This document shows, piece after piece, positions 19,560 to 64,000 of a stretch of 64,000 nt of DNA. Source of the stretch: Oikopleura dioica. Taxonomy: Eukaryota > Animalia > Chordata. The position numbers were made by a program, and so were the translations under genes. Location: positions 9,734,001 to 9,798,000 of the forward strand of contig OU015566.1 in the NCBI GenBank assembly GCA_907165135.1. Direction: 5' to 3'. Positions within the stretch are counted from its first letter, which is position 1; the number at the start of each line of letters is the position of its first letter. The notes beneath the pieces are model-generated. The model had not been told where the DNA came from. It ran no database searches and was given only the letters and a program-made list of their open reading frames with translations.

Positions 19560-20386
19560 GGCTCACTCCGCTTTGTGTTGGTGCTAAAAACTCACAGTGG
19601 CCAGGTACGGGCAAGGTGTCAAGCTGTGCAAATAGGATGCAAGGAGTTCACCGACATGTGATACCCACTGCGAAGTCCCGCAGAGACTGCTCCTAGCACC
19701 AACACTGAGCAAGGCTCGGTGTGAGATGGATTGAGCAAAAGTTAACACAAACAAGGGGACTGATCTGCAAACTCGGATCAAGCTCAGCCGGTTAAAAATG
19801 AAGATATAGAAGAATAAAAATTGAATTTTTATGAAATCTCCCCTTATAAGGTTATTTTTTACGGAGATTTCGATTATCAAGCCCAAAATCATCTTCATCA
19901 AAAAAATCTAGATTCCCTTGGTCATAATAAAGTTATGAGAATCGAAAAATATAAGAATCGGAATCGCTATCTATAATCTGCTCTTTTTGCCTTAGCACAT
20001 TTTGAGACTATTTCTGGACTATATCTTGAGCAGACAATACCAATTGGTACCCGAACTTTCTTGTCAAGGGCAGGCTAGGTGAGCTATATTCCATAGCCTA
20101 TGGACCAAAGCCTATGGTCAGATAAATATATTTTCGGTCTCAGAATTAAAATCTACAAAAAATTACTCTACAAAGTTTTATGAAATTCCAATTTTTTATT
20201 ATTTTACAAATTCACTTTTGAGCTTATCCTCGGCTAAGCTTGCTGATTTTGGAGGACCAGTCTCTGCAGGACATCGCAGCAGGCTGCGCGTGTCGGTGTG
20301 CCCGTTGCATCCTATTTGCACAGCTTGACACCTGCCTGTACTTGGCCACTGCGAGTTTTTAGCACCAACACAAAGCGGAGAACCCC
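19560..20386. mobile_element. 827-bp non-autonomous TIR element, 8-bp TSD, GG termini (Merlin- or hAT-like)
   Basis: TSD GTGGCGTC at 19552-19559 and 20387-20394. About 135-bp imperfect TIRs (about 18 differences in 129 aligned columns). No internal transposase ORF. Confidence 0.8.
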
Positions 20387-38612: not shown

Positions 38613-39137
38613 CAGTGTTTGAAATAATGGTCAAAACTCTCGTGAGCGAGTGAGCGCGAGAAGAGGTCCTCAGAATTTTAACACGAGTGAGCGAGCGCGA
38701 GCAGACTCTTTTGATTTTTTCGTGAGCGAGCGAGCGCGAGCGCAGATACCAGGATTTTTCTATTAGTGAGCAAGCGTGAGCGCTCGCTCGCTCGCTCGCG
38801 CTCACTCGCAGCTTTTCAACTATGTCTTCATTGAGTGATTTCTTGAAAAATTCTAATACTTTTAAATATGAAGGACTTTTAACTATCATAAGTTAATGAT
38901 GTGTATTCTTACGAGATTAAAAGATAATTTAAGATAGATTTCATAAATATTAAATGATTTTGTCATGAGGGTGACTTCACTAAAAATAACTGTGAGCGAG
39001 CGCGAGTGAGCGCAAGCAGGGACCTTGGAATTTTATGGTGAGTGAGCGAGCGCGAGCAAAGGTTCTCGAAATCAACGTGAGTGAGTGAGCATGAGCGCTC
39101 GCTCACTCGCTCGCGCTCACCATTTTTTCAAACACTG
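38613..39137. mobile_element. 525-bp hAT-type MITE
   Basis: TSD TTTCCAAC at 38605-38612 and 39138-39145; TIR CAGTGTTTGAAAwAATGGT; many internal GAGCGAGC/GCTCGCTC motifs. Confidence 0.9.
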
Positions 39138-47041: not shown

Positions 47042-50000
47042 TCAGGAGGCATTCAAGTCTTTGAAGTAAGTCTTGTATATGTCGACATATGGAAAGATAT
47101 CTTCAGCAAGCTCGATGTGGAAGGCATCCTTCTTTATCAAATACTGTCGTAACGGCTTGAACTCCAAGTTTTGCAAATTAGTTTTTAGACTACTGTCGTT
47201 TCCGGAGGGCGGGCGGAAATAAAATTTCTGCATAAAATTCGGAAGAATAAGTTTATGAGTCGTTATCTCAAGCCATTTCCTTTACGATTTTATTTGAATT
47301 CGGGCCCCAGTCGATTCTGCTGTCGAAGTTGTCGTTTCTCTAAGAAAACATGTTATCGAGCATCGAGGAAAAAAAACTAACGTTGTAAAGAATTCCAGGG
47401 CCAGCATAGTCCACATCCGATAAGAGCTCGCATCCTGGGGTTATCCACTGCACAACAACGTACTTATCCTTCCTGTTGACCTAATAAAATTCGCCTGCAG
47501 TTTCTGTTCAAATGTCAAAGCCTACCTTGAGAAGTTTTCCAACTAAAGGCCGTCGCACCGTATCTAGCGGGCGGGATTCAGTCTTGATTCTCAATCCTGA
47601 GACTATCAAATTTAAAAAGTGACTAGAAAGGACGCTGAACCCCAAGCATAATTGCTGCCTCCCGAATCATTCAGCGGCACATTTCGTCCTCCAACACTAA
47701 TCGGTTAATTTAGTAACTTATTATAAGACTTATTCACGCGGTCTTGGCGACCGACTGGCTGGCCACTTTTTGCAGTAAAAAGATGACCCATTAGAGGGAC
47801 GCTAGGAAATGTTAAAAAGAAAGTACCCGTTTTTATGATCCTCGATTGCTTGTTTCAGCTCATTTCGCTTGTCACCCAGTCTCCTTTTGACTTTTCTTTC
47901 ATGTGTTGCTCTCTCCCTCGATTTTTTCGTGTCCTCAGCATTTTCGGTATCACCCCACTCGCCACTCTCCGGGTCAGTGCCTGATTCAGGCCGGTACTCT
48001 TCATAGCTAAAGTAGCCTTTGATATCTTTTTCTGACACCTTTTTTCCATCATCTTCTATAAGTTCTGATCCATAAGGTTTGATGTTATATTCCTGTTTTT
48101 GGAGTTCCGAATGAATAATTCGACAGACGAAAATGTGTCTAAGTCTCGGGAACCAGACCTTAATTCTCCGCGGAAAACTTGATAAAAGTTGAAGAATGAG
48201 CGCCTAATTATAGCTATTAAAAATGGATCTTCACACATGACTACATTTTCTATCTTGTCAACTTTTCCTTTTGATATCAAAAGCCCAATACTTCTCGTTC
48301 GGCTGTACCAACATGCCCTTGGTCAGAACCTGTCGCATAATAGAAGGCGAGAGCAGCTTCGGATTACTTCATTATCTTGACGATTTTCGAAGCTCTCTCA
48401 CCTGGTTTAGCGCGGCAGGTGCGTTGAACTTGCTGAAAACCTCCATATAATCCGATTGGATGTCTTGATCGCTTCGCGCGTTCCTGTTTTCAGTCCACAT
48501 CCGGACCATGAGAATACGAACGTCCCAGTTTGTCCTGTAGTAGAAACATTTGCTGCTATTCGCACAAGCGGCCGCTAAATCCAAGTTTTAAAGAATATAA
48601 AAATATTTGCTTTACAAAATTAGTTAAAAAAGAGCATTCAATCATTTTCCTATTACTAATAGGCTATCAGGAACTGTTAAACAGTAAAATTATAAGGAAA
48701 AACAAGTGATTATTAACAAAGTAATTAATTTTAAAGACATGTAAAAGCTCGTTCAAAATAATAAAGGAAAAATTAATGAACGAGAATATTAGCTGAGAAA
48801 ATAGCAGGCACGTTACGTGAACATGCTTTTGTTGGCGAAGCTATAAGTAAAGACTTTTTGCCGAAGGCTTGAATCAAGTCTTTGACCTTCTTATTCACAC
48901 ATGAATAAATGACCACTTCCGCATTTTACGTATTTTAACGAGCACGGCAATTAATCATGATTACGTACCAAGGTGATCTTTTCGCGGGACAAGGCGGTAA
49001 TGCTGCTCCAGGGTTCCCTTTTATCGGATGAGAAAACTAGGACATGGCCTTGTTAATCTTGGAAAATCTTGTTACAAGATTCTTGTATCCATCTCTCATC
49101 CAAATGCCTGATAATCTTGGTTGTTCAACTTGAAAATCGACTTTTTTGGCTTTGTCATAGTTAAATAAAAAAAAACAAGATAACAAGGTTTGATTTCTTG
49201 ATCTAATTTAATTACCTAATTTTACATTAAGGATATAGCCTATGAAATTGAACTTTCATAGCGCCTAAATGCGACGTCAGATCATATTATTTCAAAAGAA
49301 ATCCCAACTAAAAATGTACGCAGAACTCGATTGTGGTACTTTTTTAAAATTTTTCATTTGAAATTCTCTCTGTAGAACGTTTTGAAATCTTACGATCGCG
49401 ATTTCTCGAAATTTTTACATTAAATCGCTAAAACTAAACCCATGACTGCATTAGCAAAATGCTAAACTAGAATATTGTGGCTGAAAATTTTTCAAACTCA
49501 GGCAAATTTCTATTCTAGTGTTTTCCTCTTTCTTGCTCCTGTTTTTCTTCCATGCGCGCTTTTTTGGGTCCAACCAATCAAAGCGCTCTTTCAAACGCGC
49601 ATTTTCTCTCGGGAAAGAGGAGTCGAGAGATTGAGCACCCAGCGCAGCGCTTTTTACACTATTCACGCGCCGAGGAAGCCTCACGGAAATGGCTCTAAAA
49701 TCGGTTTTTGTCGGAATTAGAGAAAACCGAACCCACAATTTTGTAGATAAGGGTCTAGATTATCTTTCTATCAAAAAAACTCGACCGATTTAATGTAAAA
49801 ATTTCGAGAAATCGCGATCGTAAGATTTCAAAACGCTCTACAGAGAAAAATTCAAATGAAAATTTTTAAAAAAGTACCAGAATCGAGTTTTGCATACATT
49901 TTTAGATAGAATTGATTTTGAAATACAATGATCCGACGTCGCATTTGGGCGCTATGAAAGTTCAATTTGAAAGGCTATATCCTTAAATTCTATAATATAT

Positions 50001-51793: not shown

Positions 51794-54700
51794 ATGAGTT
51801 GGCAGAAGAAAAACGACGATAATAATTTCGAAGCCGATGAGCGCCCGTCAAATTCCTCTGCGAAAAGCCAGAGGATCGAAAAATTAACGCAAGAAAACGA
51901 ACTGGATGAACTTTATGGTTACCAAGAGCCGTCAGAACCGGTGAGTTTCTTTCTAAATGAATGGTTGTTTGTTAAATTAATCGTATTATAACCAATATCA
52001 TCAAGGATTCCTCGTCCGTTTTCTTTCAACCAGTCCAAGCTAGATTGGGCTGGATAGAGATAGAAGGCTTGCCAGTTTGTCCCAATTGATTCCATCTCAG
52101 CTTCTACATTTCATACCATGTTATGAAGCAGCAGATTGGAAAATAGAAGTAGGGTCCAACAACAAACCCAGGAGTGTGTTCTTCCTATGTTAACAATTGA
52201 TAAGACAATGATTTTTCCACAGAAGTAGCAAATTCAGGGGACATGCTATCTAATTAACTAATTCTGGCCTCTAATCTCCAAATAATAATCTCAGAAAGAC
52301 CATAAGTTCTGCTAACTTTTGATAGAATGGGGGGTTGCTTAGGGATGCCCAGGAATGTCAAAGAATTGATGATGATAAACACAGACCTGTACCGAGGCTA
52401 AGGCCAAGGGAGATAAAACTCAGCTCACTCTGAAATTCTAAGAAAAAGACCTGAAAAATAGATCCAAAATGGATCCCTCCACGACCTCTAAATACAATTT
52501 CAGGGTGTATCAACCGGCTGGCTGGTAAACATGCACGCCGGAGACACAATTAACGAAGATGGCCAGCTTGTTTCTTGCGTCCACTATTACTTCATCAAGC
52601 AAGATGGAGACAGATTCAAAGTCCGTCTAACCTATCAGCCCTATTTCTACGTCGAGCCCAGGCTAGGCCTGGAGCACGAAATCTCCAACTACCTCTCCCG
52701 TCGATTTGAAAAAATGGTCAACGTAAAAGTCGAGCTCGTCGCAAAAGAAGATTTAGACTTAAACAATCATCTTTCCGGACTAAAAAGACATTTCGTGAAA
52801 CTGACATTTGATCACGTGGACGACATGCAGGTTGTTTTGAAACCAATTCGAGCTGCAGTATCGAGAAACAAGAAATTAGCGGACAACAAAGTCTCGGACT
52901 TAGTAATGGCGCTGGATGGAGACAGCGACGCGATTAGCTCGGATATGATGGACGAAATCGTAGACATACGCGAGTACGATGTCCCGTTTCATGTCCGGGT
53001 GTCTATTGATAAGGTACGCAAATGTCTCTTTTATCCCTAAATTCTCATTTCAGCAAATATTCGTGGCGCACTGGTACGATGTCAATTGGACTGGGCAACA
53101 TGATGTACCGACCTTTTTGAGAAGGTTTGAAAGTCTCATATTTCGCACTAGAACTTCCCCCTTTCAGAGACGACCTTTTAACGCGACCAGACCCAGTTGT
53201 CCTGGCATATGATATTGAAACGACGAAGCTTCCGTTGAAATTCCCAAACTCGGAGATTGATCATATTATGATGATATCGTACATGGTCGACGGGCAGGGA
53301 TATCTTATCATCAATCGGGCGATCGTTTCGGCGGACGTTGAGGATTTCGAATTCACTCCTAGGCCAGAATTTGAGGGGCCGTTTATTGTTTATAACGAGG
53401 AAGATGAATTTGCTACTATTCGCAAGTTTTTCGATCATATTCAGGTAAAACGAAAATGCATTAATTCAAGAAGTAAAGGGATTGTTTAGGAGCTCAAGCC
53501 ACATGTTATCGTCACTTACAACGGTGATTTCTTCGATTGGCCCTTTGTCGACGACAGGGCCAAAGTACACGGACTGACGATGAAGCGCGAAATCGGCTTC
53601 GAACGCGAAACGCACGGCGGTGAAGACACATTTCTCTGCCGCCAATGTCTTCACATGGACGCCTTCAAATGGGTCAAGCGTGATTCTTACTTGCCAGTCG
53701 GTTCCCAGGGTTTGAAAGCGGCAGCAAAAGCGAAACTACGATTCGATCCAGTTGAGCTTGATCCAGAGTTAATGTGTAAAATGGCGACCGAGCAGCCGCA
53801 AGTTCTAGCGACATATTCCGTATCAGACGCTTTAGCGACTTATTACATGTATCAGAAGTACGTTCATCCCTTTATCTTCGCCTTGTGTATGATCATTCCA
53901 ATGGAGCCGGATGAAGTCCTGAGAAAAGGATCAGGAACGCTTTGCGAGGCGCTGCTGATGGACTACGCCTACAGAGCAAATGTAATTTATCCGAATAAAC
54001 AACAGACGAATATGGACAAGACGTTTGATGGCCATTTACTCGAGTCTGAGACCTACGTGGGAGGTCGGGTAGAAGCCATTGAGTGTGGAGTTTTTCGGGC
54101 AGACTTTCCGGAAAGATTTCGTTTAGGTAATCTTTTTCTTATTCTAGGAGACTTAATTTTTATTAGATCCGGATGCGTATCAAGCACTTTTGGACGCAGT
54201 CGATGAGACCATGAAGTTTTCATTAGAAAAAGAAGAGGGCGTACCGCTAGATCAAGTTGAAGACTACGACGAAGTGTGTAACCAAATCAAAGCAAAGCTA
54301 GAATCACTGCGCGACACGCCCAACCGAATCGAGAATCCGCTAATTTATCACCTCGATGTGGGTGCGATGTATCCGAATATTATTTTGACGAATAGACTCC
54401 AACCGCCTGCAATCATCAACGAAAATACTTGCGTTACGTGTGATTACAACACGCCAGATGCTGATTGTCGACGACGCATGGACTGGATGTGGAGGTAAAC
54501 TGAAACAAAGTAGCCATTTTGTTTGATAAGAATAGATAATTCACCTTCTTCGCGTAAATTTCACGTCATTTCGCTTTTGCTAATTCAGCCTTGGAATTTC
54601 GATTCTCATTGAATACATTTTAAGAGGTTATAAAAAGACCCCTGAATAATTTATTCGCGCGATGACCTCTCTTCTCATGCTCTTTTTTTTAGAGGAGAAT

Positions 54701-57700: not shown

Positions 57701-60700
57701 CGAGATTAGAGGCTGAGCCGAGTCAGCTTGTGCCTTTGTTCGATAAACCAGGGCTATACCAGTCGATTACGGTGGAAATGACGATCAACGGCATTTTCGA
57801 AGCGGCTTTGTTGCAAAGCCACAACCTGACCGAGCTAGACGGGTTTGAGACGTTTCAACAAGGGACCGTAGATAAACAGTTCAAGGGTAAGACAATTATA
57901 TTAATTAATATTGATGGCATGAATTTGACGTTGGGTTTAAACTTGTCATTCAGCCGACGGTCAATTGAATACGAATTATGCTGAGTCGACTCTTGCCCTC
58001 CCTCAGTACCGTATCTTGAAGAATCTGGTCGCTGTTTGGGTCAAAGACATCGGTAAGGTGGCAGACAGCTTTTAAGAATACAGTCGGTTTCAGGGGTGTG
58101 CATTCGGCCCGAAATCGGGTGTCGGGCCTACCGAGGGCCGAGCCGAAACGAAAAAATCAGTGTTGGGCCGGCCGAAAGCCGAGCCGAGCCGAGGTGCCCG
58201 AATCGGCTTCGGCTCAACTTTCGGCTCGGGCAATTTGGGCTAATTTTCGGGCATTTCGGGCAATGATTTTCGGAAAATTAATATAAATCTGAGCTTAAAA
58301 AACAACCGATTTTGAGGAAAATCGGCCAAATTTCTGATGGCAAAATTTTGGGTTATCAATTTATAAGGTTATTGGTAGATATCAGTCGAAGAATCAAGCA
58401 CAGATCTCTGTAAAATTCTTTCTTACTCTCTAACTTTGGCCGGGTGCCCGGTTGCCCGAAGATTGGGCCGAATTGCCCGAATGCCCGAGCCTGCCCGAAC
58501 CTGCCCGAGAGAATTTCAGGTCACCGGCCGACCGAGAGCCGAGCCGAACATGATTTGCCCGAAAAATTTGTCGGGCAGCCGAATGCCCGAGAGCCGAATG
58601 CACACCCCTGGTCGGTTTATTCTCATGGGCAAAAGAATATTTCTAGCAGTCTATCTTAACCATATGTTTGTAGCGCAATACGACAGCTCTTTTGCAGATT
58701 CTCAGGTCCAGCATCTGATGCGTTACATCACCTCTACCACTTCACTTCTTTTTGATCCCGCTATTCAAGAATTACTCGTCTCAGCTGTATATCGTTTGTA
58801 CAAACTTCTCTGCAACGAGTTGAAACGAATCGGCTGTGAGGCCATTCACGTCTCTCCAAGAAAACTACTGCTCGTTACGAAAAAGAAGAATATCGGGGAT
58901 GCAATTGGATATGTCGACTTTATTGAAAAAACTTTGCGGAAAAAGGAGTTGTTTCAGGCGATTGATTTCAAGTTTACCTCTGCCTGGGAGACGCTTTTGT
59001 GGCACAATCAAAATAATTACGGAGGTTTGCAAGTTCAAGATAAAGTCATCAAAGAGATCATGGGGGATGAAGAAGATGAAGATGACGTCGTAGAGGAGGA
59101 TGAGGAAGAAGAGATGGTGATGAAGTTCGAATGGAGTGAGCATCTTCCCACTGAGGCTGGAATGCAAGCTTCATTCACTCAGGTAATCCAATAAAACCAC
59201 GGACAAGTTTTAATGCTTCGTATTTACAGCTGATTGCTGGCTACATCAAGGTCCTTCACGAACAAGCTAAAGAAACGAGCGATGAAGAGAAGCTAGCCGA
59301 ATTCGCTGTGGGCATAATTACCGGCGAGTTCTCAGATCACCTTCTCGAAGCAACGCAAAAGATTCTAAATAGATACCCGGCCGGAACGACACGTGCGAAA
59401 GAAGTTTTCCCAAAGCTAGCTGGCAGCTTTCTGACGCTAGATCACCCGGCACTATTCTATGCGAAAGTTATAACGCAGGTAAGAATAAGTATCGCTAATT
59501 AATCGAGCCGGCATGAATACTTGTGCAGGTTTTGCTCGCTAAGGTGGATTCTCAATACAAAAAATCGCCTTAGCAAAGTAGATATTTTTATGAGAAACGA
59601 TTCAGGTTCTCTCCGCCCACGAAGGCGTTTCTGAAGAGCTCCAGTCGCTTAGACGAAACGTTTTCCGCCTCCTTGGCATTTCCGAATTCTCTGAGAAAGG
59701 ACAATGGGTTGATCCCGCCGCCAAGTTGATCCTCAAGGATGTCGTTTGCAGTCAATGTGGCGTTTCCCAGGATTTAGATTTGACCGTCGATCTCAATCCT
59801 GACTGCGAGTGTGACTTCTTTGATGAAAAGTCACACAAGCAGGTTATTGAGTCTCGCTTGATTGAAGAGCTCAAGGTATAATCAAAGACACCGTTTGTTT
59901 TATATTCTCCCCTGTTTTTCGAACCCCTCTAGAAAAGGGATGAGGACATCCTGAGATTATTTTAACCCCCTACGCCACAGAATAGACCTTCAGCTCTTAT
60001 TTTAGCCAGATTTAGGCACTGTATGATATCTGTACTCCGAGTCCATAGACTCCCCAAAAGGGGTCGAAATGAGCGAAATCGGGTATTACCGGGTTAATGA
60101 CGTCATAAGTCAAAGACCATGTTTCAATTACCTTTTCTAAGTACCCCTACGCCACAGATCAGACCCTAAGCTACATTCTGGTACTCTTGGGAACCCCCTG
60201 TGATAACTGTGGTCGGAGAACATAGACTCCCCAGTTCGGGGTAATATAAAACAAACGGTGTCAAAGCGTTTTCAACTTCATTCGTTACAATTTTTCAATA
60301 GAAACGAGTCATTGGGTGGAATTTGCAAGACGTGGTCTGCATGCGATGCAACCAAGTCCGCTCCGGCGACATGGGACATCTCTGCGAATGCGCTGGAAAG
60401 TTCAAATGTATCGAAGGCAGGGTGGCTATTTTGGACTTGGGGGTTAGTTGAATTGGATTGGATCCAATCCAATAAGGTTTGGATGGAATTTGGATGGCCA
60501 GGGTATCGGATTTTATTGGGTAAAATTGGGTAATTGGGGAAATTGGGGATTGGCGACATTGGAAAATTGGATCTTCTTGGGGAATTGGCAGTTGTTGGCA
60601 AGATTGGATCCGAGAAAAATTGCGAAAAATGATCGACCAATCAGGTTTGTTCTCAACCTACACTCATCACGCGCAGTCTACCTTTCTCAGACGGATAAAT

Positions 60701-63700
60701 ACTGATCATTAGAGAGTTTTACTGCGATTTAAATGGCATTTTCTTTTCTTTTACTAGTCAACCTTTTTCAGAAGGGATGAGTCCACCTGCCAAGCGTTCC
60801 AAGAGATGCATTTATGTGGCGAGTGACGAAAAAGACAAGGATAAACGAAAAGAAGAGGTTGATAGAAAGAAAGCGGAAATTACTGCTGATGAAAAAGTGA
60901 GCAACCGACTGGTGAATGGAAGAAATGGACCCCTACAAAACTACAAGACAAGATTCGAGAGCTCAACCTTGAATTTGAAGAGTACTATTTCGAGGGATTT
61001 CCGACTTGCTACTTGCGCTGCGCAAGAATAGATGGAGCTAAGTGCAAAAATGCAGAGGAGAGGTAAAATTTGCATTTTGTAAAAATTCTTAAAAACCTTA
61101 AGCCATTCCATACATACGATCAAAATACAGATGTCTATAAAAAGACTCTCGAACCGATTGTGGATCGCCACGCGCAAGCACCAGATGAGCAGAGAGTACT
61201 CGCGCTTCTGAATAACACCAAGGACCACAGAGTTGATGTCCAGAAGAAAGTTCTGCAAGTCATGCGCGATACCGGAACAAGCTTCCGGTTTTGGTCACAT
61301 GACTCTGTCAAGGCCCTGATGCGCTGCCTTCTCAAAAATGTATCCTTTAGCCAGATGCTCATCAATCAACTTTGCCTTTCGAAGGATGCCATCAAAATAT
61401 ACATGAAAGAAGAGGCAAAGAAAATTCGGGAGCGCCTTCAACAGATTCTTCCGGAAATGGCAAAAAAGGGCCGCCTGTCAATTTCTCTAGGATAAGGATT
61501 TCAAAGTTTCTTTAAAAATTTTTGAATAATTTGTCTTATTAACAATTTAATATCCTTTAAAGACCACAAATACGTGAAAACTAAAGAAAATACGCTCTGG
61601 AAGATACTCGGGGTTGAGGTCAATATTCGCTGCAAAAACGGATTTTGGAACTGTTTGATCGGTTATGTTCCGATGCCGGACTCAACTGCGGATCACACCA
61701 TAGAAAAACTGAAGCAGATATTTGAAGAATACAACCTTACCGATGCGATAGAGAAAAACTTGGTCTGCATTGTGAGCGATCAGGCAGCAGAGTCCGTGCC
61801 CGAGCATTTTACGATCAACCGTAGCATTTGCGGAAGTCATTCAATGTGTTGCAACCTTAAGAGAGCGTGCGAACAAAATCTCAGACCAGGTGGACCGAAG
61901 GATAAGAAGTACGAATCACTTGAAAAATTCATCGACAAGTGTGAAGCTACAGTATCGGCGAGTGATCTTCCGGCTGGTGTCGGATACAAGTCAATCAATG
62001 CGTTTTTGATTTCTCAAGAAGTGACTAATCGCTTGCTTATAAAAGAGTTTTATAATGCAAAAATAAAAGCGAGTACTGAAATTCTTGAAGACGATCAAGT
62101 CAAACGACTTGTTGAAGAAAAGACGGATGCATTCCTCAACAGAAAGGAGAAAGGGAAGGCCATCGATCGAATTTCCGGCTCCACGCGCTTCCGGAAATTA
62201 ATCTATGGAGTTCAGCGTCTCCTTTTGAGCGAAGATAGCCTAAACAACCTCTTTTCTATCAACCACCCTCAACGCCATCTTCTCGCTGAGTGTCCAGTCC
62301 CAGATCTGCAGTTTGCGCGATCAATCAACCCTCTTCTTATCGAAATTCATCGCAGTATCAATATTCTCGAGTCTGACTCGCTTGCCTGCGGATCAGCGTA
62401 CTACAAGCAAATCGAACGAATAATGATTGAGTGCGTCAATCGAATCACAATCAGTCGGACCGAGGAATCCAGATTTGCGAAGGCTGTGCTCATCAGTGTG
62501 GTGGAACAGGTTACAAAAAAGCGGATTGATATGAATGGAAACGATGTCCCATGTCAAGTACCCCTTCGTTTTACCAACAAAGACTTGGCAAGCATTTACC
62601 TGGCACCCGACTCTACATCGATAGCGATGAATTTTCATCCAGTCGTCGCCAAAATGAAAGATTCCCGAGTCCCCTTCATCTCCAAAATAATGGTATGTAT
62701 TTATCTTCATGCCAAAAAAAAAAAAATAATTCAGAAAGTACTCGTCGACGGAACCAAGGATTGGCTCGAAAAAGCGAAGAACTGGATCACAGAGGTTGAT
62801 CGAACAATGGAAGACGACGAGCTGACAGATGAACAGTTGTTACAGCTCCTTGAAGCTGGCGTTAATAATGTTCAATGTGACAGCCAAAATAACGCTGTTG
62901 GCCCACTTAGTCACCGCCGCGGACTAGGAAAGCCAAAAGAAATCCGTTCCAAGATCGAAGAAGAGATTGCTCAGTACGACGAAGTAAATGATACTGATAT
63001 AGAAGCGCGTAAGTAATTTTCATCATTAATCTACTTTATTTGAAATTAGACAAGAAGTATTGCGCAATGAAGAAGGTTGCGGAAGATGATATTGTTGGAG
63101 AGTTCTGGCGGCGATACGCTGAAACCTTGCCAAGATTGAGCAGAATCGGATTAATGGTTCGGTTTTTTTGAGTTCAAAAATAAAGCATTTCTTAGCTTCA
63201 TCACTCTTCCGTCTCAAGTTCAAGCCTGGAGCGAGCCTTCAGTTTCACGACATTGATGCGATCTATTCGACGCCACAAACTTGCTGCCAGCACAATCCTA
63301 GACATTGCCCTTGGATCTACAGAAATAAACTTTGAAGAATAAGTATTGTTTGTTTGTTTTTTTTTGAATTTGCTAGCTGGAAAATATTGGAAATCCAATG
63401 GAATCGGGGCATATTGGGAATTGGGAAAAGTTGGAATTTCGGAAGAACTTGGAATTGGATTTTAGTTGGGAATTGGGCGAAAATTGGATTGGATTGGATT
63501 TTGGATGGATAGACCCGGTTAGAAATTTTTTGGATGGAATTTGGATGGATAGACCCCTATTTTTTGTCCAAAATAGCCACTCTGATCGAAGGTACTAATT
63601 CTGACTGATTGTCGCCCAATCTAATTCTTAATTTTTCAGACGGTAAAGAACTTCAAACTTACTTCCGAACACTTCGTCAACTAGCCAAATTTTACAAAAT

Positions 63701-63791
63701 GAATCACTTGTCATCAACAATGGACTGGATTCTCGGGAGTGGAGGTCGAAAGTCCGCAGCTGTCAAAATCGACCGAAACATTCTCAATTAG
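51794..63791 (+). CDS. POLE: DNA polymerase epsilon catalytic subunit
   Basis: Exons 51794-51940, 52504-53013, 53054-53124, 53168-53444 (ExoI YDIETTK), 53490-54126 (ExoII YNGDFFD), 54167-54494 (DVGAMYP), 54693-57886 (ELDTDG), 57954-58052, 58674-59182, 59230-59478, 59606-59875 (CysA), 60302-60416 (CysB), 63640-63791. All phases agree; the last intron needs a GC donor. Confidence 0.97.
58091..58610. mobile_element. 520-bp hAT-type MITE in POLE intron 8
   Basis: TSD GTCGGTTT at 58083-58090 and 58611-58618; TIR CAGGGGTGTGCATTCGGC; internal GCCGA/GCCCGA repeats. Confidence 0.92.
59888..60261. mobile_element. 374-bp TIR element of unclear superfamily in POLE intron 11
   Basis: TIR ACACCGTTTGTTTTATATT at both ends, flanked by CAAAG (59883-59887 and 60262-60266). 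Two internal direct units containing CCCCTACGCCACAGA..CATAGACTCCCCA. Confidence 0.85.
60418..63584 (+). mobile_element. 3167-bp autonomous-type hAT transposon at the POLE exon 12/intron 12 boundary
   Basis: TSD ATCGAAGG at 60410-60417 and 63585-63592; 19-bp TIR CAG(G/A)GTGGCTATTTTGGAC; TTGG-rich subterminal repeats; internal transposase gene. Confidence 0.97.
60777..63342 (+). CDS. hAT transposase, about 721 aa in the simplest splice model
   Basis: Exons 60777-60896, 61103-61490, 61563-62692, 62735-63008, 63050-63156, 63196-63342. Motifs SISLD (D1), IVSDQAA (D2), CGSH (CxxH), STRF (TRW-like), LAPD (LDPR-like), [18 protein letters not shown] (E, hATC domain). Confidence 0.9.
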
Positions 63792-64000
63792 TTTCAAATT
63801 CTGTTCACAGCCAGTTATCTGCCTTATTATTTTAATGAAAAACTTTGCTGGCGTCTCATTTATTCACTGCCAGTATTTACTTATAAATGAAACTTCACAT
63901 TCCAAAGCTTCTATTTGAAACCTTTTCCTTGTAGAAAAATGTATAAATGAGCCAAGCAAGAGCTTTGATAAAGAAATATCTCGATAAGTTTCATCCAGGC

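Follow-up and report, generated by a model that had tools for sequence, protein, structure and literature searches.

What becomes of an essential gene when a transposon inserts across one of its splice donors? The question is raised by a 64,000-nucleotide (nt) stretch of chr1 of the Oikopleura dioica assembly OKI2018_I69 (OU015566.1, positions 9,734,001 to 9,798,000; "the window" below, with positions counted from its first letter). In it, a hAT transposon of 3,167 bp, with an 8-bp target-site duplication (TSD) and 19-bp terminal inverted repeats (TIRs), occupies the last exon-intron boundary of chr1.g2620, the gene of the DNA polymerase epsilon catalytic subunit (POLE). POLE is essential, and a sequence-only reading of the window had argued that the filled allele should therefore depend on splicing out the whole transposon through a GC donor made by the insertion itself. 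The geometry behind that proposal holds; the step from essentiality to splicing does not. We give about even chances to an insertion allele that is leaky or null and sheltered by heterozygosity, and consider a sheltered, partly damaging insertion more likely than a self-hiding one. The parts of the locus are as follows.

60302-60416, + strand: penultimate coding exon of POLE (CysB zinc finger; Pfam zf-DPOE, E 8e-9), ending ATCGAAG and matched exactly by annotated protein P0037
60410-60417, + strand: left TSD, ATCGAAGG, made of 7 exon bases and the G at intron +1; single copy in empty alleles
60417-60422, + strand: candidate GC donor AAG/GCAGGG, phase 1, read from the sequence; its G comes from the TSD and the remainder from the TIR
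60418-63584, + strand: hAT transposon, 3,167 bp, in the orientation of POLE, delimited by TSD and TIRs; each end carries subterminal repeats rich in TTGG
60418-60436, + strand: left TIR, 19 bp, identified by the TIR match, with G at position 4
63566-63584, - strand: right TIR, 19 bp, identified likewise, with A at position 4; includes a TAG acceptor, phase 1, whose last base is 63576
63585-63592, + strand: right TSD, ATCGAAGG, which in sequence restores the old donor context AAG/G (AAG/GTACTA)
63592-63639, + strand: original 48-bp GT-AG intron, intact, known from empty alleles and from its shared position in Bergen O. dioica
63640-63791, + strand: last POLE exon, 49 codons plus the junction Asp (protein match, haplotype comparison); a single-nucleotide polymorphism (SNP) at 63644 is the second allele marker

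As had been claimed, the TSD spans the exon end and intron base +1, and the old intron now lies intact 3.2 kb downstream of the filled exon end. Removal of the element with one TSD leaves a 48-bp GT-AG intron, and real empty alleles match this reconstruction. The lone mismatch between the TIRs (position 4, left G, right A) does fall on donor +5, and the GC at 60417 and the GT at 60422 are indeed phase 1 and phase 0, respectively. Two matches of this kind did not arise by chance in any of 100 shuffles. The hallmarks of a hAT insertion are present: the 8-bp TSD stands on both sides and is single in empty alleles, and the short TIRs start CAG, fitting (C/T)AR. An assembly artefact was rejected in view of the perfect TSD, the TIRs and the real empty alleles.

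Populations had been proposed as the place to look for empty sites, and empty sites are there. Marine metagenomes yield them in L016 and L017, which are 97-99% identical to the window, represent a same-species haplotype and are probably a single haplotype assembled twice, and in two sister-population haplotypes, L019 (88-93% identical) and L022. Bergen O. dioica has an intron at the same place, of 42 bp and with a GT donor, without the element. No second filled allele was found among the haplotypes read (one same-species, two sister-population, Bergen). Because empty alleles exist and no second filled one was found, the insertion is, on this comparison of sequences, recent and polymorphic, the same-species part of the comparison being one haplotype. 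A more distant syntenic relative lacks the last POLE intron itself, and so, judged from uninterrupted called proteins, do two further lineages.

The same assembled haplotype carries another insertion, which bears on what essentiality can be taken to mean. UBA2, the SUMO E1 subunit, is essential, and one of its coding exons is split at the conserved NAL-DN motif by a 6.5-kb gypsy element (L008:24619-31107), 2.8 kb downstream and about 2.4 kb past the window end. (L008 is the chr1 stretch that runs past the window end, with 0 mismatches to the window over 22,207 bp.) The 256-bp long terminal repeats of the gypsy are 100% identical, its TSD is 4 bp, and Bergen UBA2 is continuous there. Essentiality of POLE thus does not imply splicing, since this haplotype bears an exon-splitting gypsy in another essential gene; disabling insertions in essential genes can occur in this assembly, most simply as heterozygotes. 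The assembly was built from Nanopore reads of one male of ~3.6% heterozygosity and merged into one haplotype (PMC8008620); the animal is BioSample SAMEA7282646 (PMC11067885). With the insertion polymorphic, the argument that the allele must be spliced because POLE is essential falls. As for the portion of POLE at stake, the C-terminal module is essential in yeast Pol2 (PMC7308368).

A sheltered allele is favored by the empty haplotypes, by two further insertions in POLE introns together with the UBA2 gypsy, by the merged haplotype of a male with such heterozygosity, and by the splice-site competition taken up below. Three considerations weigh against it: we infer both the heterozygosity and the mis-splicing of the insertion allele from sequence; O. 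dioica often splices non-canonical donors; and the POLE frame is undamaged on the insertion haplotype. Over 760 codons there are 14 synonymous changes and 1 replacement, with 0 replacements in the last exon and the frame intact. This fits function, but it also fits a recent insertion, and the counts do not tell whether the allele works or has died recently. (A long-dead pseudo-allele was rejected, replacement changes not being in excess.)

How the filled allele might be spliced depends on three further features.

60408-60409, + strand: weak phase-1 GT within the exon, seen in the haplotype comparison and used in the published model; TGT on the insertion haplotype only, TGC in the empties; the SNP at 60409 is an allele marker
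60745-60771, + strand: strong internal acceptor in the sequence, in phase 1 and 354 nt away from the GC donor; splicing to it would link POLE, in frame, with the start of the transposase (an exon trap)
63577-63591, + strand: possible 15-nt micro-exon of TIR end plus TSD, in frame (annotation P0037; phases); its final AG at 63591 is a possible acceptor abutting the old donor

Donor strength was computed as duplex energy against the 5' end of U1. The GC donor pairs at -5.2 kcal/mol and the old donor at -5.6, real POLE donors ranging from -4.9 to -11.0; by this measure the GC donor would be usable, if weak for an intron as long as 3.2 kb. It had been called a plausible donor and the sole in-frame option. 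The first part stands, supported by the frequency of non-canonical introns in this genome, by a GA donor in an intron of the element itself, and by conserved spacing after CysB. The second does not: GT 60408 and GT 60447 are likewise phase 1. Their pairing with U1 is poor (-1.3 and -0.3 kcal/mol, respectively); use of the former would cost 3 residues, and use of the latter would add 10 with no stop. Out-of-frame donors at 60421, 60422 and 60443 pair with U1 as well as the GC donor or better. Read-through past the exon meets a stop 12 codons beyond the last full codon. On the acceptor side, three phase-1 sites had gone unnoticed in the sequence-only reading, 63576, 63591 and, inside the element, 60771. 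At the level of sequence, TSD and TIR supply splice sites in frame (GC 60417 and AG 63591, both phase 1).

Spacing after CysB is free of indels in human POLE and in all 12 further homologues inspected; normal protein would therefore require that 60416 be joined exactly to 63640, and this calls for the GC donor. Efficient removal of this kind, giving wild-type mRNA, could proceed as one 3,223-nt GC-AG intron, or in two steps: the old intron out first, then the GC donor to the TSD AG at 63591, which amounts to tandem introns around a zero-length exon. This is possible but rather unlikely. In its favor are that it is the sole route to normal protein, the undamaged frame, U1 pairing near that of the old donor and a strong exonic AAG. 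Moreover, 11% of O. dioica OKI2018_I69 introns are non-canonical (PMC8008620), and non-canonical donors in this species follow exonic AG (PMC7072748). Against it stand a median intron length of 49 bp (PMC8008620), competition from nearer acceptors, absence of the insertion from all other haplotypes read and, as weak evidence, an annotation that drew on RNA intron hints yet settled on a different junction. The full combination seems decidedly doubtful: a GC-AG intron created in a single event immediately ahead of the old intron, a duplicated AG/GT that acts as a recursive zero-length-exon site, and precise removal of a 3.2-kb sense transposon.

The sheltered leaky or null allele that we favor would arise in the following way. 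A nearly complete hAT inserted recently, in the register that puts the end of its TSD on intron +1. The old 48-nt intron retains its own donor and would probably be removed first. The GC donor would then find acceptors closer by: 60771, which leads into the transposase as an exon trap, and 63576, which brings in the micro-exon and 5 added residues. Five internal introns and the transposase's polyA-type signal (AATAAA at 63324) could further disturb removal, and termination there is possible. Imprecise splicing of this sort would give a mixture of products with correct mRNA in the minority, and a leaky or null allele would be tolerated thanks to a normal other chromosome.

Detection of the 60416-63640 junction in RNA had been put forward as a check. 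As written it is not decisive, because empty alleles yield a letter-identical junction; untagged reads are uninformative, and only reads that carry the insertion-haplotype bases (T at 60409, T at 63644) discriminate, the empty alleles read having C and A at these positions.

The public gene model, CAG5105974.1, takes another path: GT 60408, AG 63576, the micro-exon and then the old intron. If the right-TIR acceptor at 63576 and the 15-nt micro-exon were mainly used, POLE would be full-length and altered, by 5 added residues with the GC donor or 2 with GT 60408; we hold this to be unlikely. The T-rich tract of 63576 is comparable to those of real acceptors, the site precedes 63591, the annotation uses it, and GT 60408 exists on the insertion haplotype only. 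That GT pairs very poorly with U1, however, and may be a chance synonymous change, one of four in the penultimate exon on this haplotype. The model's junction reads STL instead of C and has a 2-residue gap relative to every homologue; it looks like a predictor's workaround and is probably an annotation artefact. Since the model is a prediction made with RNA intron hints from other animals of the culture, we did not accept it as evidence of splicing.

The product of the nearest strong acceptor depends on the gene inside the element.

60777-63342, + strand: transposase gene in which five introns are inferred (61063-61102; 61491-61562, GA donor; 62693-62734; 63009-63049; 63157-63195), recognized by its frames, by D, D-x-CxxH and E motifs, and by ESM Atlas and PDB matches

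Splicing from the GC donor to 60771 would fuse POLE, without its last 50 residues, to the transposase, and one could suppose this fusion to be the main and possibly a functional product. Phase, sense orientation and the position of 60771 as the nearest strong acceptor suit that idea. As assembled, however, a frame break brings the fusion to a stop at 61029 with 87 residues added, the allele is not fixed, and the terminal helices of the Dpb2-binding region would be lost, so that we find the proposal quite improbable. The frame breaks (at least one, probably two) are of 1 nt and lie in A5 runs of the first coding exon (60892-60896, 61046-61050); they may be Nanopore errors or real. CSB-PGBD3 is a fixed and conserved exon-trap fusion with a piggyBac element. 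It resembles the present case in having, within a host intron, a sense transposase whose own acceptor is in frame with the exon before it, and differs in being piggyBac, fixed and conserved, where the POLE element is a hAT, polymorphic and frame-broken as assembled.

The transposase was assigned as follows. Its ESM Atlas neighbors are DUF659/ZBED1/hAT RNase H proteins of the hAT clan (top 0.90, a lead-level score). The best PDB match is Hermes (E 0.15), with the second Asp and CxxH aligned; the first D and the E motif were recognized by eye. Weak but concordant, these sequence matches suggest a DDE transposase with CxxH and a helical insertion domain. Exon by exon, no Pfam match was obtained, including to the hAT dimerization domain, which is split over two short exons; the transposase homologue search and the last-exon search came back blank, and the single-sequence fold of the core had a predicted local distance difference test score of 38, too low to use. 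Intron 2 of the transposase (61491-61562), which splits the codon of the first catalytic Asp, needs its GA donor, so the element relies on non-canonical splicing by its host; this donor fits the pattern published for O. dioica (PMC7072748).

Further copies of the family were found neither in the window, in the fetched loci nor in three collections, the rest of this genome lying outside the search. TIR scans gave 3 metagenome, 2 genome and 0 viral matches. The 3 metagenome matches have no partner TIR and no similarity to the element and were dismissed as chance; the 2 genome matches come from bacterial records and were assumed, with no closer look, to be chance.

The sequence-only reading had gone on to suggest a self-camouflaging insertion. 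In an adaptive form of this proposal, the family would target donors and left TIR position 4 would have been selected as donor +5. The only TIR mismatch does coincide with +5, and the TIR at the donor carries the G. CAGG termini are common, though: they occur at both ends of the unrelated hAT-type element at 58091-58610, while another such element has T at position 4. Moreover, just half of the real POLE donors (6 of 12) show G at +5, and the element in flipped orientation gives an equal U1 duplex energy. The GC donor is a by-product, since any CAG-ended hAT in this register makes AG/GCAG, the TSD register and the common terminus yielding donor +1 to +4. The adaptive proposal finds no support here, and we regard it as very improbable. 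About 1-1.6 per 1,000 random insertions (assuming 4-6 introns per gene) are expected to take this register, so a few such loci are expected by chance, and survivorship would account for several of them.

Other mobile elements and conserved features lie nearby. A POLE intron holds a hAT-type miniature inverted-repeat transposable element (MITE) of 520 bp (58091-58610; TSD GTCGGTTT, TIR CAGGGGTG), absent from L016-L021. A second MITE, with ~25-bp TIRs (59887-60262), is 11 nt from a POLE donor and is absent from L016 and L019; its duplication is either 5-bp CAAAG or 3-bp AAA, and its internal repeat is spaced at 177 bp. L016 thus lacks both MITEs carried in POLE introns of the insertion haplotype. 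Elsewhere in the window are a 525-bp hAT-type MITE (38613-39137; TSD TTTCCAAC, TIR CAGTGTTT) with GAGC-rich repeats, and fold-back elements at 49227-49986 and 19566-20380 with long TIRs of about 200 bp and 130 bp. POLE intron 1 contains a probable intronic small nucleolar RNA (snoRNA; 52356-52443): an 84-bp stretch is 93% conserved in Atlantic O. dioica and C and D box motifs are present, while Rfam C/D snoRNA matches are weak only (E 0.4-1). Between POLE and UBA2 lies a conserved gene without an informative Pfam match (window 63947-64000, L008:22154-24115), whose synteny is kept in a more distant relative.

The POLE insertion has relatives among known systems. Maize Ac/Ds alleles are spliced from pre-mRNA through GT donors within Ds, which usually sits antisense in exons. 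They share with the POLE element a hAT with donors near its terminus, leaky alleles and several spliced products; they differ in those internal GT donors and antisense exon insertions, the POLE element being in sense orientation with GC at the TSD/TIR junction. Introners are TIR transposons; in the families described, the TSD is the source of the donor, of the acceptor or of the two together (Gozashti et al., 10.1101/2022.06.06.494994; PMC12130899). The likeness is a TIR transposon whose TSD provides all or part of a splice site, and any splicing at POLE would work in that manner. Introners, however, are multi-copy, shown to be spliced from exon insertions and mostly non-autonomous, whereas the POLE insertion is one copy with a nearly complete sense transposase and putative splicing. 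They also enter an uninterrupted exon, whereas the POLE site is an older intron boundary common to Bergen O. dioica. We do not class the insertion as an introner, because its target was already an intron boundary, one copy was found and its splicing is putative. In the transposon-insertion model of intron gain, an element that enters an AG/G target leaves a proto-splice site at either end; cases are reported for Oikopleura, maize, rice and Drosophila (PMC3443670). A duplicated AG/G context likewise flanks the POLE element, but the model makes a new intron in coding sequence; a target that was already a donor would give donor replacement or tandem introns.

One practical consequence is the probable error flagged in the public POLE gene model CAG5105974.1. 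Should precise GC splicing not occur, the locus joins the sheltered insertions of a genome rich in heterozygosity. Should it occur, the locus would be a polymorphic, datable replacement of a canonical by a non-canonical donor, in a genome where non-canonical introns make up 11%. Were its recursive form to occur, and at several loci of this genome, transposons would provide a route to recursive splice sites and non-canonical donors.

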